From Octopus sinensis (taxonomy: Eukaryota), in contig NC_043022.1 in the NCBI RefSeq assembly GCF_006345805.1, positions 11,594,001-11,658,000 on the forward strand: a DNA stretch of 64,000 bases, read 5' to 3'. Shown piece by piece: positions 5,152 to 55,198 of this stretch; within the stretch, counting starts at the first letter, position 1, and every line of letters starts with the position of its first letter. Both the position numbers and the translations under genes were made by a program. The notes under the pieces are model-generated. The model worked only from the letters and a program-made list of their open reading frames with translations, was not told the DNA's origin and made no database searches.

Positions 5152-5292
5152 CACAATGTGCCACAGCACTGCTCTGCTACCAATGTCAAAGCAATTTCAC
5201 TCACTCAGACTGCGAAAATAATCTTAAACTAAAAGAATTTGTAGTGAATTGTAAGGATTCCTACTGTGCTGTGGAGAGCCTATATATTGATG
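5152..5292 (+). CDS. Ly6/uPAR (three-finger, quiver-like) gene A, exon 2 (end of signal peptide plus Cys1-5); exon 1 not found in window
   Basis: tatattccag acceptor, phase 1; (A)QCATALLCYQCQSNFTHSDCENNLKLKEFVVNCKDSYCAVESLYID(G); donor G|gtaagg at 5293; aligns with exon 2 of genes B and C. Confidence 0.85.
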
Positions 5293-5362
5293 GTAAGGCT
5301 GTTAGCTTTACTAAACAAGGAAAATTGAAATCTTTCAAATACTACCTTCTTCAATTTATTAA

Positions 5363-6149
5363 TATCTGGATCTTTTCCTTTTGAACGGCAGTTTTCAACA
5401 CAATTTCTAGTTAACTAAACACTTTTAAACTTCATATACTGGTAGAATGTGTCAAAATAAAACATTTTTTTCTCATGGCTTTCTTGAGAAAATTGTAATT
5501 TGTAAGTTTAACGTAGTTTAATTTTTTGAATTTTAACCAATCCTATCGCCTCTATTGAGCTAAAATCATTTGCTGCGTCTAAAACTGAGACAACATCCTG
5601 TCACTTTTATGTTTATGTTCAGAGAGCGTGTGTATAAAATTATAGAATCATTTTGTTTGTTAATTGTTTAAATTATTTTCCATTGCTTTCGTTTTAGCCT
5701 TTCATTTTTTTTTTTCTTAAGCAATGGAAAATAGTTTAAACAATACTCGTGTATCTCAAAACAAAAACAAAACAAATAATTTTAGACACACGCGTAACAA
5801 TTAAATTAATTTAACAATTAATAAAAAAAAAACGAAAGGCTAAAATTTAGGGTTAGTGTTAGTGTTAGGGTTAGTGTTAGGGTTAGTGACAGGGGCTAGG
5901 GTTAGGGTTAGTGACAGGATGTTGTCTCAGTTTTAGACGCAGCAAATGATTTTAGCTCAATAGAGGCAATTGATTGGTTAAAATTCGAAAAATTAAACTA
6001 CGTTAAACTTACAAATTACAATTTTCTCAAGAAAGCCAAGAGAAAAAATGTTTTATTTTGACACATTCTACCAGTATATGAAGTTTAAAAGTGTTTAGTT
6101 AACTAGAAATTGTGTTGAAAACTGCCGTTCAAAAGGAAAAGATCCTAAT
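5363..6149. mobile_element. Fold-back MITE with about 245-bp terminal inverted repeats and internal TTAGGG/TTAGTG repeats, in intron 2 of gene A
   Basis: 5363-5605 is the reverse complement of about 5905-6149; telomere-like array at about 5847-5915. Confidence 0.8.
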
Positions 6150-6349
6150 ATCTTTCTTTTTAAGGTATAATAGACACATGGATGGCTGGATGGTAATAAG
6201 CCAGTTTTTTAATAATGTGGTCTTGGGTTCAGTCCCACTGCTTGGCAACTTGAGCCAGTGTCTTTTCACTATAGCCCTGAGTCAACCAAAGCTTTGTGAG
6301 TGGATTTCAGAGATGGAAACTGAAAGAAGGCATTGTATATTTGCAATGG

Positions 6350-6625
6350 CCTCTCTCTCTCTGAGAGTGAAAGGTAGATTGCATGATGCTTATGTATGAA
6401 CAGTTATGCTCCAAGGTAGTGAGATATGGGCCCTAAATGAAGACAACATGCATAGACTTGGGAGGAATGAAGTTGGAATGCTTTGAAGGATGTGCAACAT
6501 CAGTGTACATGTATGACAAGGTGCAAATGTGCTGAGAGAAAAGTTGAACATGAACGAAATTAGAGGCAGCTTGCAAAAGAAAAGACAACATTGGTTTGGG
6601 TGTGTGATGCATATGGATGAAGACG
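6350..6625 (+). mobile_element. RTE LINE 3' fragment
   Basis: LRVKGRLHDAYV and LREKLNMNEIRGSLQKKRQHWFGCVMHMDED, homologous to the RTE C-terminus at 48442-48906. Confidence 0.7.
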
Positions 6626-6924
6626 TAAGTATGTATGAATGGATGCTTTTCTTTGAGTTTATTTCTGAATTACGAGAGTTCCTGATGTTTGTAAATATGT
6701 GGTTGAGTTGGAGTGTTGGTCGAACTGTCGATGCCTACACTCAAGTGTGTGTGTGTATTCACCTAAAGAATCTCAAGACTGAGAATCTTTGGAAAGTCTT
6801 ACAAATCTTCCCTGTGCCATTAATAGATTGGATTTGAGGAATCCACATCAGTTTCTTTTGCACTTTCTTCAAAAAAACCTAGCATTTCAAGGTTTTGTAT
6901 GTACATATGTATGTATGTATGTAT

Positions 6925-51294: not shown

Positions 51295-52256
51295 ATATAA
51301 TAAACCTTTACATAAATAAATAACGTGAAATACATGAAGGGACAGACATAAAAGACAAACGGGTCATTCAAAGCCTTCGTTCTTCAGTCAGAAACTGATT
51401 CCTCATCGCAGATTTCGGCTGTTTAATTCTGAGATCCGCTCTGAATCAGCCAGCCACAGAAGGAAAGAATGCAACGCAACAGAGACGAACATGAAACAAA
51501 AAAAACTTTTTTGGAGACAGTAACGGTTAAAAACATGGATGACACAGGCGCCCTACGGCTTTGAGACAAAAGGAGACACAAAAACAATATCAGCAAGCGT
51601 GGAAAAATAATTACCTTTTCGGTGATGAGACACATGTTGAACAAGCGGCCGATGGCAACAGAATGGCTGAGGCAGCAAGTCTCAAGAGGGTAAGAGAGAG
51701 AGGGGACCAAGGAGGGTGGAAGGCGAGGACAGAAGCAGTGACCAAGAGAGAGAGGGAGAGAAGGAATCAGAGAAGAAGCAGTGATCAAGAGAGAGAGGGA
51801 GAGAAGGAATCAGAGAGGCTGGGAGAAAAAAGCGCCAAAACAATTTGGCAACGAAGCAATGGCGAAGGAAAGAAAAAAGTTTAAAGACATCGTGCAGGGG
51901 TGGTGATATGATAAACATAAAGAAGTTATTATGCATGTACGCTGCGAAATATATAATAAACCTTTACATAAATAAATAACGTGAAATACACGAAGGGATG
52001 AACATAAAAGACAAACGGGTCATTCAAAGCCTTCGTTCTTCAGTCAGAAACTGATTCCTCATCGCAGATTTCGGCTGTTTAATTCTGAGATCCGCTCTGA
52101 ATCAGCCAGCCACAGAAGGAAAGAATGCAACGCAACAGAGACGAACATGAAACAAAAAAAACATTTTTGGAGACAGTAACGGTTAAAAACATGGATGACA
52201 CAGGCGCCCTACGGCTTTGAGACAAAAGGAGACACAAAAACAATATCAGCAAGCGT
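51295..52256 (-). repeat. 306-bp direct repeats (51295-51600, 51951-52256), Penelope pLTR-like
   Basis: Near-identical copies with a 656-bp period; (TA)n at the left end; degenerate CTGAAGA...GAAT motif on the minus strand. Confidence 0.65.
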
Positions 52257-53064
52257 AGAAGAAAATAACATTTTCTTTAAACAACACTCATATTCTAAAA
52301 TGCACACATCCGAGTCTGTTGTGGATCATTCTTCCCTGATGAAATACCCAATTAACCAGTTTCAATATGAAAATTTAAATTAAATTAATTTAATTGAATT
52401 TCTGGAATGAACTAATTAAGTATGGAAACAGCTGTAGGACTGGAATTTCATTATATGAATTTGAGTACTTGTGAATAAACTAATGACTGCATGTCAGTTT
52501 CTCCATTTCTCATTCATAAGTATTTTAAATACCTACATATATCAATGCAAAACTAATATATCTGGGTTTTCACTGAATACTGATATTAACCAGAGAACTA
52601 GGATGCTAGCATCTCTCAAAGGATTATAGGTCCTTGACACAATTAACTATATATATATATATATATATATATATATATATATATATATATTAAAAATTAG
52701 AAAAAAACCCACCTTTATCTAATAATAATAATAATTTAAATATATATATATATATATATACATACATACACTTTCATTTAATGAAGGTATCCTTGGCCTG
52801 AACAGTAGTCTACGATATACACCTTGCTTAGATATTTACTCCTTTTGTGGTTCCATTTGCCATGAAACATATGTAGCCTGGATCTTATCTACTCCATTCT
52901 GTAACTCTTGTTTTGTTATTTGCACACCCAGCAACCCTGGTTGCCTACTGAGAAATATAAAAAGAACTTTATTCAGGTAATCATACTTCAATACAAAAAA
53001 ATCCACAACCTTCCATCTCAATAAACCACAAGTGGCCCTGAAAGTTTTTTTTATATTTACTTCC

Positions 53065-53430
53065 GTGGCTGTGTGGTAAGTAGCTTGCTAGCCAACCACA
53101 TGGTTCCGGGTTCAGTCCCACTGCGTGGCATCTTGGGCAAGTGTCTTCTGCTATAGCCCCGGGCCGACCAATGCCTTGTGAGTGGATTTGGTAGACGGAA
53201 ACTGAAAGAAGCCTGTCGTATATATGTATATATATGTATGTGTGTGTGTTTGTGTGTCTGTGTTTGTCCCCCTAGCATTGCTTGACAACCGATGCTGGTT
53301 CAGCAAAAGAGACCGATAGAATAAGTACTGGGCTTACAAAGAATAAGTCCCGGAGTCGATTTGCTCGACTGAAAGTGGTGCTCCAGCATAGCCGCAGTCA
53401 AATGACTGAAACAAGTAAAAGAGTAAAGAG
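53065..53430 (+). mobile_element. tRNA-derived SINE with internal deletion
   Basis: Same family as 11320-11687. Confidence 0.85.
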
Positions 53431-55021
53431 TACCGTCCAACCAATGCTAGCATGGAAAACGGACATTAAACAATGATGATGATGATACATACATATATAT
53501 ATATATATATGTGTGTGTGTGTGTGTGTGTGTGTGTGTGTGTATATATACATATATATATATATTCTTTTATTCTTTTACTTGTTTCAGTCATTTGACTG
53601 TGGCCATGCTGGAGCACCACCTTTAGTCAAACAAATTGATCCCAGGACTTATTCTTTCTGAGCCTGTTTCCAAGTAAGGTGATATTTTCCCCATGACCAG
53701 ATGTGTTTTCCAGGGAAGACTGGAAATGGATAACAGTGTCTGTATGAGAGTGACACTCATTGACAACTATTATGTGGTGTCAAAGCAAAGATGCAGTAAC
53801 ATACACTCAAGCACATGTACACACACACAGGGTGTGTGTGTATGACAGGGTTCTTCTAGTTTCCATCAACCATGTCCACTCACAAGACTTTAAGTTTACA
53901 AACACTTACCGAAGATGGCACACGGTGAGACTGAAACTAAACCATGTGCTTGGCAAGCAAACTTCTTACCACACAACCACGCCCGTGCCCGTAATTTATT
54001 ATCATTTTTTTATGATTCTATTATTATTATTATTATTATTATTATTATTATTATTATTTTATTTTTATTTTTATTATCATTATTATTATTAAGGTGGCGA
54101 GCTGGCAGAATCACTAGCACGCCAAGCAAAATGCTTACTGGTATTTCATCTGTCTTTACATTCTCAGTTCAAATTCTACCAATGTCGAGTTTTGCCTTTC
54201 ATCAGTTCAGAGTTGATAAATTAAGTACAAGTTGTGTACTGAGGACAATTTAATCGACTGGCCCCCTCTCTCAAAATTTCAGTAGAAAGGTTTATTATTA
54301 TTATTATTATTATTATTATTACTATTATTATTCAGTAGTCTTATTTTTATAACATGATTTCACTGCATTACCGAGTGCAGCTCTGCATGCCTTGGGTATG
54401 TGCTGTGGTTTGTTGTGATGCTCTTATTATTATTATTATTATTATTACTGAGTGAGCAGTACATGCTATCAAAGTAACACTGGGGTACAAATAGAAAAAG
54501 CCCAGTACACCCATCTGATAAGGGTACATCAGGCACATGCATCACTTCTGTATATGTGTAACATTGTGATCTTATATCAAGATAAACAGTGCACAACCTT
54601 GCAGGTGTGACCCACTTAGAATTTTCTCCAGGTTGATTAGCCCATCCTTCTCAAAAGGTCCCTGAATAAGGGTTGTTTAAGGATGATGAATAAAGCACAC
54701 ATGTTTTCAAGAGTGAATTATTCAAACCCCAAGGAATCCCTCTGGCTATGATGTTCTCCCACAATCCCTGCTCATAATCAGAAGTGCACATATTGTCAAC
54801 CACTAAGGGACATGCTCAACTGATTAAAGTCAAGCGCCTGACAAGGAAATCTGTGGTATTGAGCAGAATATTTGCCATAACCCATCTTTTACACCAAGCC
54901 AAAACATGAACAGAATAACACTTCTTATCAGTTAAGATCAGAAGACATGAGAGCCAGTACCTAATACTACATCAGGGCATATTATTATTATTATTTTTGC
55001 ACCTCTCAATTTTACTTTCAG

Positions 55022-55198
55022 TTTCAACCAGCAATGGTCTGTCCTGCTACAGTTGTGAAGGAACCAAACCATTTTCAAAATGTGAATCCGATATAATGGA
55101 ATACCGATTGGGAATAAATTCAAAGTTTGCAGTAAACTGTTCTCAATATTCACACATGACAAAACCATATTGTGCAATTGAAAGATACATGAAAAATG
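55022..55198 (+). CDS. Ly6/uPAR gene C, exon 2 (177 nt, Cys1-5); canonical exon 3 not found in window
   Basis: ttttactttcag acceptor; (V)STSNGLSCYSCEGTKPFSKCESDIMEYRLGINSKFAVNCSQYSHMTKPYCAIERYMKN(G); donor G|gtaagt; 26 of 60 ungapped identities to gene B exon 2, same length. Confidence 0.9.

Follow-up and report, generated by a model that had tools for sequence, protein, structure and literature searches.

Introduction

Proteins of the Ly6/uPAR (LU) family regulate surface receptors, and in flies and mammals both nicotinic receptors and potassium channels are tuned by them; Lynx1, for instance, acts on nicotinic receptors. The genes encoding LU proteins follow a common rule, whereby three exons are separated by phase-1 introns, loop 2 is interrupted by an intron at its tip, the signal for the glycosylphosphatidylinositol (GPI) anchor resides in exon 3 and the genes lie in small contiguous clusters (PMC6600238). 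In single-domain LU proteins the 7-8 disulfide is reported to be essential, and to be missing only in the N-terminal domains of multi-domain members of the family (PMC6600238). In Drosophila, loop 2 of Quiver/Sleepless is required for binding Shaker and nicotinic receptors (PMC4735452), and transcription-induced read-through chimeras are known to occur in mammalian Ly6 clusters (PMC2562388, PMC3626593). Here we analyse a 64,000-nucleotide stretch of Octopus sinensis chromosome CM016884.1 (assembly GCA_006345805.1, ~11,594,001-11,658,000, plus strand), hereafter the window, which contains three genes, designated A, B and C. All three, two of which are contained only in part, very probably belong to a tandem array of quiver (QVR)-type genes, each encoding a single LU domain, and their products would be glycosylated, GPI-anchored three-finger surface proteins that tune membrane partners.

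The octopus proteins share with Drosophila Quiver/Sleepless and the insect Ly6 proteins (PF17064) a single LU domain with the ten-cysteine pattern and the C-terminal CN motif, as well as a predicted signal peptide and GPI-like tail, and an arrangement in clustered genes with apparent lineage-specific tandem expansion. The insect family also provides their best Pfam match, and UniProt names their orthologues after it. They depart from it in scoring only ~20-30 bits, with B and C below the cut-off, and in their spacing, as Cys6 is separated from Cys7 by a long insert that includes a predicted helix, and the loop from Cys7 to Cys8 is very short; the family match need not mean one-to-one orthology with Quiver. 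The mammalian Ly6/uPAR clusters (human 8q24: LYNX1/SLURP2, LY6H, PSCA and GPIHBP1) present the same gene design and the same organization in small clusters formed by duplication (PMC6600238). Moreover, Lynx1, PSCA, GPIHBP1 and uPAR are among the structural matches obtained with Foldseek, and chimeric transcripts between neighbouring genes are known in these clusters. In contrast, no direct sequence similarity to the mammalian proteins is detectable (best PDB match LYPD6, E = 0.29), and last exons swapping half a domain are not among the features described in the cited literature on the mammalian clusters.

Two further three-finger groups delimit the comparison. The ectodomains of TGF-beta/activin type II receptors, which are three-finger folds with extra secondary structure in their loops, rank highest among the structures matching the gene B model (Foldseek E 7e-3 to 8e-2, probability ~1.0, target-normalised TM-score 0.56-0.63), but the octopus proteins lack the transmembrane helix and the kinase and show 13-15% identity to them, so that the likeness holds at the level of the fold only. 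Snake three-finger toxins (Pfam PF00087) belong to the same fold superfamily, yet they are secreted without a GPI tail, whereas the octopus proteins end in a hydrophobic tail and do not match the toxin profile significantly. The octopus proteins are hence not members of the toxin group.

Results

Three genes of LU design in the window

Gene A encodes a protein of 156 amino acids (aa) whose mature domain contains eight cysteines instead of ten, while the 165-aa product of gene B presents ten cysteines in its mature part and one in the signal peptide, and the mature domain encoded by gene C again contains ten (Table 1). The protein assembled from the exons of gene B is 100% identical to RefSeq XP_029651581, annotated as "uncharacterized protein LOC115224798 [Octopus sinensis]", and the gene A product and both gene C isoforms likewise equal RefSeq proteins. 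All junctions in the three genes show GT donors and polypyrimidine-AG acceptors, every intron is in phase 1, and the 15.5-kb first intron of gene C is the one annotated in RefSeq. The four junctions proposed by an earlier, sequence-only reading of this stretch (16025/18702, 18878/22464, 5292/7332 and 39546/55022) are therefore correct in splice sites, phase and RefSeq identity. The three-exon, phase-1 design that it attributed to all three genes, the 165 aa and ten cysteines that it assigned to gene B, and the 26/60 identities that it counted between the 177-nucleotide (nt) second exons of B and C also proved exact. Its description of the genes as hidden, on the other hand, has to be abandoned. 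All three are present in RefSeq, and in UniProt their orthologues from O. bimaculoides and O. vulgaris appear as "Protein quiver" or "Protein sleepless"; genes A, B and C are thus already annotated, yet unstudied.

A search for the LU cysteine patterns in the six frames of the window returned matches only at the three exon-2 and two exon-3 sites of A, B and C, and the same patterns matched on average 0 and 0.08 times in 50 shuffled sequences. The confinement of these matches to the five exons, with practically none in the shuffles, indicates that the gene observation is not due to chance. Within the window, tblastn comparisons between the paralogues yielded E-values from 1e-5 to 8e-15, and neither tblastn nor the cysteine-pattern search located any further LU exon in the rest of the window on either strand. 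An exon-2-like tblastn match at 57323-57484 (33% identity, E = 6e-4) was rejected as spurious, as it overlaps a retroelement open reading frame (ORF) on the opposite strand (57281-57652) and lacks the cysteine pattern.

Family signature and predicted fold

All the products of the three genes match the Pfam PF17064 profile (QVR, "Quiver family u-PAR/Ly-6-like domain") over model positions 1-86 of 86. Against a curated gathering cut-off of 27.3 bits, gene A passes with 29.8-30.2 bits, while B scores 23.4 bits and gene C isoforms X1 and X2 score 22.8 and 20.1 bits, respectively. An exhaustive HMMER search against 1.84 billion representative proteins identified 167 related clusters at E <= 0.001. 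In an alignment of 74 homologues, the ten cysteines, R85, the sequon at N113 and the C-terminal CNGP motif are invariant or nearly so, with CN strictly invariant, and 49 of the 74 family members match the QVR profile (E <= 0.01). The octopus proteins thus present the 8-10 cysteines in consensus order ending in C-x4-C-N that characterize LU domains, with ten mature cysteines in B and C and eight in A.

The AlphaFold2 model of the gene B product, generated with the 74-sequence alignment, reached a predicted local distance difference test score (pLDDT) of 89.6 and a predicted TM-score of 0.78; with an alignment of only seven sequences, no usable model was obtained (pLDDT 41.8). The predicted structure is a three-finger beta-sheet fold. 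Foldseek searches of this model against the PDB returned, with probabilities of ~0.9 or more, the three-finger proteins TGF-beta receptor II (ectodomain), uPAR, GPIHBP1 and Lynx1, followed at slightly lower values by C4.4A (0.66-0.89), ActRIIB (0.54-0.90) and PSCA (0.85). The target-normalised TM-scores of these three-finger matches range between 0.5 and 0.69. The list also includes a few ribosomal proteins, with probabilities of 0.15-0.47, and a control search against a viral structure library produced low-probability noise only.

Predicted signal-peptide cleavage leaves the L-x-C-Y/F-x-C start typical of a mature LU domain. At the other end, each last exon closes with a hydrophobic tail of 12-20 residues, which a short spacer sets apart from preceding small residues (G, S, N or A). 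By the hydrophobicity heuristic used here, these tails present Kyte-Doolittle values of 1.5-2.5 over 12 residues, and in the gene B model residues 149-164 form a terminal helix. Given that the design of A, B and C corresponds to the rule stated for the LU family (PMC6600238), it is diagnostic, but also canonical.

Distribution of the subfamily across molluscs

Named members of the subfamily were found in cephalopods (Octopus and Argonauta), gastropods (Biomphalaria, Bulinus, Lymnaea, Pomacea, Patella, Lottia, Littorina and Haliotis) and bivalves (Dreissena, Potamilus, Argopecten, Ostrea, Solemya and Mactra), many of which were automatically designated "Protein quiver" or "Protein sleepless" in UniProt. 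Outside the molluscs only a tail of weak matches was detected. The Lottia gene is composed of the same three exons, with the domain-internal junction at the same point of the protein, and stands alone in its 26-kb locus. In addition, transcript-like contigs of ~1 kb from ten sequencing runs encode, without interruption, a relative of 164 aa with 46% identity to gene C isoform X1. The organism from which the contigs derive, presumably a further cephalopod, thus expresses such a gene and splices it in this manner. Octopus A, B and C, the Argonauta protein and four unnamed transcripts constitute a single clade apart from gastropods and bivalves when the sequences are placed in a neighbour-joining tree, with a bootstrap value of 41%. 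At this value, the grouping suggests an expansion in the cephalopod lineage without establishing it.

Extent and history of the cluster

Scanning of neighbouring stretches of the same chromosome (loci L003, L004 and L002), spanning ~142 kb in all, outlined a cluster of at least five genes with eight last exons. On one strand, and following a gene for a 4952-aa LDLa/Ig protein, the order of genes and exons is A (e1, e2, e3), B (e1, e2, e3), C (e1, e2, e3a, e3b), B' (e1, e2, e3, X_e3) and C' (e1, e2, e3a', e3b'). The unit formed by B' and C' is a colinear segmental duplicate of B-C, with 87-95% nucleotide identity. The 5' boundary of the cluster is marked by the 4952-aa neighbour (L003 1-6, record ~11,582,327), a perlecan/hemicentin-like protein with LDL-receptor class A and many immunoglobulin I-set domains.

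The same cluster order is found in the independent assembly of O. vulgaris (L005). In O. bimaculoides, where many assembly gaps intervene, the order is A, B, a C-type exon 2, e3b and X_e3, followed by C' e1, e2 and e3a. The two C-type copies of this species pair one-to-one with O. sinensis C and C', implying that the B-C duplication is older than the split between these species. The possibility that the duplication is an assembly artefact was consequently rejected, both on this basis and on the shared order in O. vulgaris. In Argonauta hians (L006), a B orthologue is followed by an X_e3 exon. In the O. bimaculoides locus, B exon 3 is moreover repeated in part (L012 14270-14455; residues 27-88, 82% identical). 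The repeat is located 500 bp past the complete exon and beside an assembly gap, and could reflect either a local duplication or an assembly artefact.

The B-C and B'-C' units differ by 47.5 non-synonymous and 17.5 synonymous changes, yielding a pooled ratio of non-synonymous to synonymous substitution rates (dN/dS) of 0.71 from small counts, and no cysteine is affected. In exon 2 of B (18702-18878) and B' (L002 13757-13933), seven changes are non-synonymous and none is synonymous, which hints at positive selection on finger 1, in numbers too small to test.

Taken together, these data sustain part of what the sequence-only reading had put forward on the nature of the cluster. Its Ly6/uPAR, quiver-like assignment agrees with the end-to-end QVR matches of all products and with the confidently predicted three-finger fold, and the hydrophobic tails that it described resemble GPI signals by the hydrophobicity heuristic. 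The same-strand tandem arrangement is borne out at a larger scale than claimed, and the statement that cysteines are fixed while loops diverge fits the mostly non-synonymous changes between the duplicated units. The cephalopod expansion that it advanced fares less clearly, for the octopus genes do group together in the tree, but at low bootstrap, and the subfamily is also present in gastropods and bivalves.

Last exons and chimeric gene models

Two of the gene types in the cluster are followed by more than one candidate last exon. RefSeq describes two isoforms of gene C, one ending in e3a (X1, 163 aa) and the other in e3b (X2, 160 aa), and the same pair occurs at the downstream locus and in O. 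bimaculoides. The second copy of gene B is followed, after its own exon 3, by an extra last exon of the eight-cysteine type, X_e3, which is missing from the current clean gene models. Both gene A and X_e3 have the Cys7/Cys8 pair replaced or deleted, whereas B and both C isoforms retain it; the pair is at least 90% conserved in the family, its numbering being inferred from alignment order.

RefSeq also contains chimeric isoforms of 223-226 aa in O. sinensis and O. bimaculoides, which join B-type exons to C-type exons and encompass 1.5 LU domains with 15 mature cysteines. These models remain in frame because every intron is in phase 1, but their 15 mature cysteines preclude a regular LU domain. 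Fusions of a similar kind are seen in the O. vulgaris models of 181 and 265 aa. The chimeric models are probably the product of read-through or of annotation artefacts.

Transposable elements and repeats

The interval between B and C in the window includes a segment without counterpart in the duplicated unit, occupied by a minus-strand long terminal repeat (LTR) retrotransposon. Its four open ORFs encode gag with a CCHC zinc knuckle (251 aa), an aspartic protease (212 aa), reverse transcriptase (RT)/RNase H (532 aa) and integrase (285 aa). X_e3 occupies the corresponding place in the paralogous unit, and a search of the window for X_e3 remnants returned none. Insertion of the LTR element, or a deletion associated with it, has probably removed X_e3 from the copy in the window.

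Several other repeats were observed. A long interspersed nuclear element (LINE)-type, non-LTR RT ORF of 440 aa (48442-50281, minus strand; Pfam RVT_1 E = 2e-31) is contained in the long intron that follows gene C exon 1, and more degraded LINE-type RT copies are located at 1733-2964, 35410-35784 and 57281-57652. A dispersed repeat of ~400 bp, probably a short interspersed nuclear element or an element resembling miniature inverted-repeat transposable elements, is found in both orientations with ~67-75% identity (7762-8196, 11285-11623, 38184-38624, 44869-45232 and 53065-53427), with several further copies in neighbouring loci. Long dinucleotide microsatellites include a (GT)n tract just past the gene A stop codon (7630-7690), as well as (TA)n and (CT)n runs, with sites at 12569-12718, 16480-16581 and 44310-44554. 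A CCA/CAC-rich tract (18620-18675) lies directly 5' of the acceptor of gene B exon 2.

Table 1. Exons of genes A, B and C and associated features. Positions refer to the window unless a locus is given.
Feature	Position	Strand	Remarks
Gene A (LOC115224715) exon 1	1.68 kb upstream of window start		MDVRTSSTLWLLFLTT
Gene A exon 2	5152..5292	+	End of signal peptide and Cys1-5 of LU domain; phase 1 on both sides
Gene A exon 3 (last exon, including stop)	7332..7615	+	RHC...SICNKDYCN; no Cys7/Cys8 pair; hydrophobic tail at end
Gene B (LOC115224798) exon 1, coding part	15971..16025	+	Signal peptide MSAQGLHWFIIPLCLLIS; donor CAG/GTAAGA
Gene B exon 2	18702..18878	+	177 nt; Cys1-5; next intron at loop 2 tip; donor ATG/GTAAGA
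Gene B exon 3 (last exon, including stop)	22464..22729	+	Cys6-10; conserved NTT sequon; CNGP motif; GPI-signal-like tail
Gene C (LOC118760862) exon 1, coding part	39504..39546	+	Signal peptide MVPAWSVLITFLLT; ATG at 39504
Gene C exon 2	55022..55198	+	177 nt; Cys1-5
Gene C last exon e3a	~64473-64745	+	~473 bp past window end
Gene C last exon e3b	~74929-75191	+	~10.9 kb past window end
B-C interval without counterpart in duplicated unit	26347..32272	-	LTR retrotransposon, ORFs 28231-31886; X_e3 sits here in paralogous unit
X_e3, O. sinensis	L002 28167-28397		Extra last exon of eight-cysteine type after B' exon 3
X_e3, O. vulgaris	L005 27087-27314		As above
X_e3, O. bimaculoides	L012 41430-41657		As above
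X_e3, Argonauta	L006 21498-21701		As above
Chimeric RefSeq isoforms, O. sinensis (LOC115224789)	L002 10001-50168		B-type (B or B') exons 1-2, C-type exon 2 and exon 3; 223-226 aa
Chimeric RefSeq isoforms, O. bimaculoides (LOC106879162)	L012 10001-48477		As above

Discussion

In genes A, B and C, each exon corresponds to a distinct part of the predicted structure. Exon 1 provides the signal peptide, and exon 2 contributes Cys1-5, covering finger 1 and the strand that ascends into finger 2. The strand descending from finger 2 is encoded by the last exon, as are finger 3, the CN motif at the C-terminus and the hydrophobic tail. The mature products would be N-glycosylated, GPI-anchored three-finger proteins at the cell surface, the loops of which may bind other membrane proteins and tune their trafficking or gating, as described for Quiver/Sleepless and Lynx1. 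Several observations weigh against this interpretation. The RefSeq models of the three genes are predictions, and the transcript collection searched contained no assembly coding exactly for the A, B or C proteins. B and both C isoforms fall under the curated QVR cut-off, and by sequence the best match to a solved structure is weak (LYPD6, with the 74-sequence profile against PDB sequences), the seven-sequence profile returning no match in the same comparison. GPI anchoring is predicted by a hydrophobicity heuristic; in gene A the tail is followed by eight polar residues, and the tail encoded by C e3b is weakly hydrophobic (Kyte-Doolittle 1.48). Furthermore, the functions of LU proteins are very diverse, channel or receptor modulation being only one possibility. 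Modulation of channels or nicotinic receptors may be the likeliest single mode of action for the products, even if, taken by itself, it stands well short of probable.

The breadth of the QVR family bears directly on this point. The Pfam profile spans the whole insect Ly6 group, junction proteins included, and a match to it denotes the family and not Quiver itself. The octopus proteins could thus be components of epithelial or glial barriers, like Drosophila Boudin, Coiled, Crooked and Crimpled, Ly6 proteins required for septate junction assembly, instead of ion-channel modulators. Coiled is tied to septate junctions in the literature (PMC3058042), and a housekeeping function in epithelia would agree with the occurrence of the subfamily in every mollusc class sampled, sessile bivalves among them. 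Such a role is a serious alternative but appears unlikely, since orthology to any particular insect Ly6 did not emerge and the weak constraint between the duplicated units, most visible in B exon 2, fits diversifying recognition molecules better. Fast divergence of the loops between paralogues, together with a fold common to snake toxins, would also be expected of secreted toxin-like or defence factors from the salivary (venom) gland or the skin. Every last exon, however, ends in a hydrophobic tail after small residues, as in membrane-anchored LU proteins, the Pfam Toxin_TOLIP profile reaches only E = 0.16-0.3, and homologues occur in non-venomous bivalves and grazing gastropods. The literature searched contains no link between cephalopod venom and LU proteins, and neither it nor the data gathered here connect these genes or cephalopod Ly6 proteins with skin or with the chemotactile or nicotinic receptors put forward in the sequence-only reading; searches with the LOC identifiers returned nothing relevant. 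We deem a toxin or defence role very improbable, and a surface protein tuning membrane partners remains our preferred interpretation for the products of the cluster.

In most respects the cluster is composed of ordinary, already-annotated LU genes of canonical design. The set of last exons, which lies mostly outside the window, is its only structurally unusual feature, and is worth following up alongside gene A with its missing Cys7-8 pair. Since the domain-internal intron interrupts finger 2 at its tip, switching between last exons would exchange the anchor signal, the whole of finger 3 and one half of finger 2. It is plausible, if not quite probable, that octopod quiver-type genes use conserved alternative last exons in this manner, with C exon 2 joined to either e3a or e3b and B' exon 2 to either B_e3 or X_e3. 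Finger 1 would then stay constant, while the swap would affect finger 2 in its descending half, the whole of finger 3, the anchor and whether the Cys7-8 disulfide is present, in an arrangement kept since before the split of Argonauta and Octopus and later copied by segmental duplication. Two alternative last exons each, for the C-type genes and for B', would give ~8 different proteins from five genes. Alternatively, e3b and X_e3 might be relics of degraded copies that are not used, with the RefSeq isoforms, B-C chimeras included, arising as artefacts of read-through or of cross-species protein mapping. The chimeric models, incompatible as they are with a regular LU domain, and the chimeric transcripts documented in mammalian Ly6 clusters (PMC2562388, PMC3626593) speak for this explanation, as does the loss of X_e3 from the window's own B copy; among the proteins fetched, moreover, none joins B exon 2 to X_e3. 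Degraded relics are nonetheless hard to reconcile with the state of the exons. In O. sinensis, O. vulgaris and O. bimaculoides, e3a, e3b and X_e3 all retain intact ORFs, the full set of expected cysteines and strong acceptors. X_e3 is 89% identical in O. bimaculoides and, still intact, 71% identical between Argonauta and Octopus, where the neighbouring constitutive B exons reach only 42-49%. The hypothetical protein joining B' exon 2 to X_e3 scores 26.6 bits on the QVR profile, above B itself. Finally, in the cluster scan neither e3b nor X_e3 was preceded by a signal exon or an exon 2 of its own, which implies that, if used, they must splice to the preceding exon 2. On balance, we consider the relic explanation possible but doubtful.

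Should conserved alternative last exons be in use, they would represent a modular, "half-domain" diversification of a three-finger receptor modulator. The clean gene models, the confident fold model and the map of the cluster in four octopod genomes allow direct cloning and testing of these proteins. The nervous and chemotactile systems of octopuses are greatly elaborated, and an expanded, fast-diverging set of LU proteins would be a reasonable place in which to seek accessory subunits.

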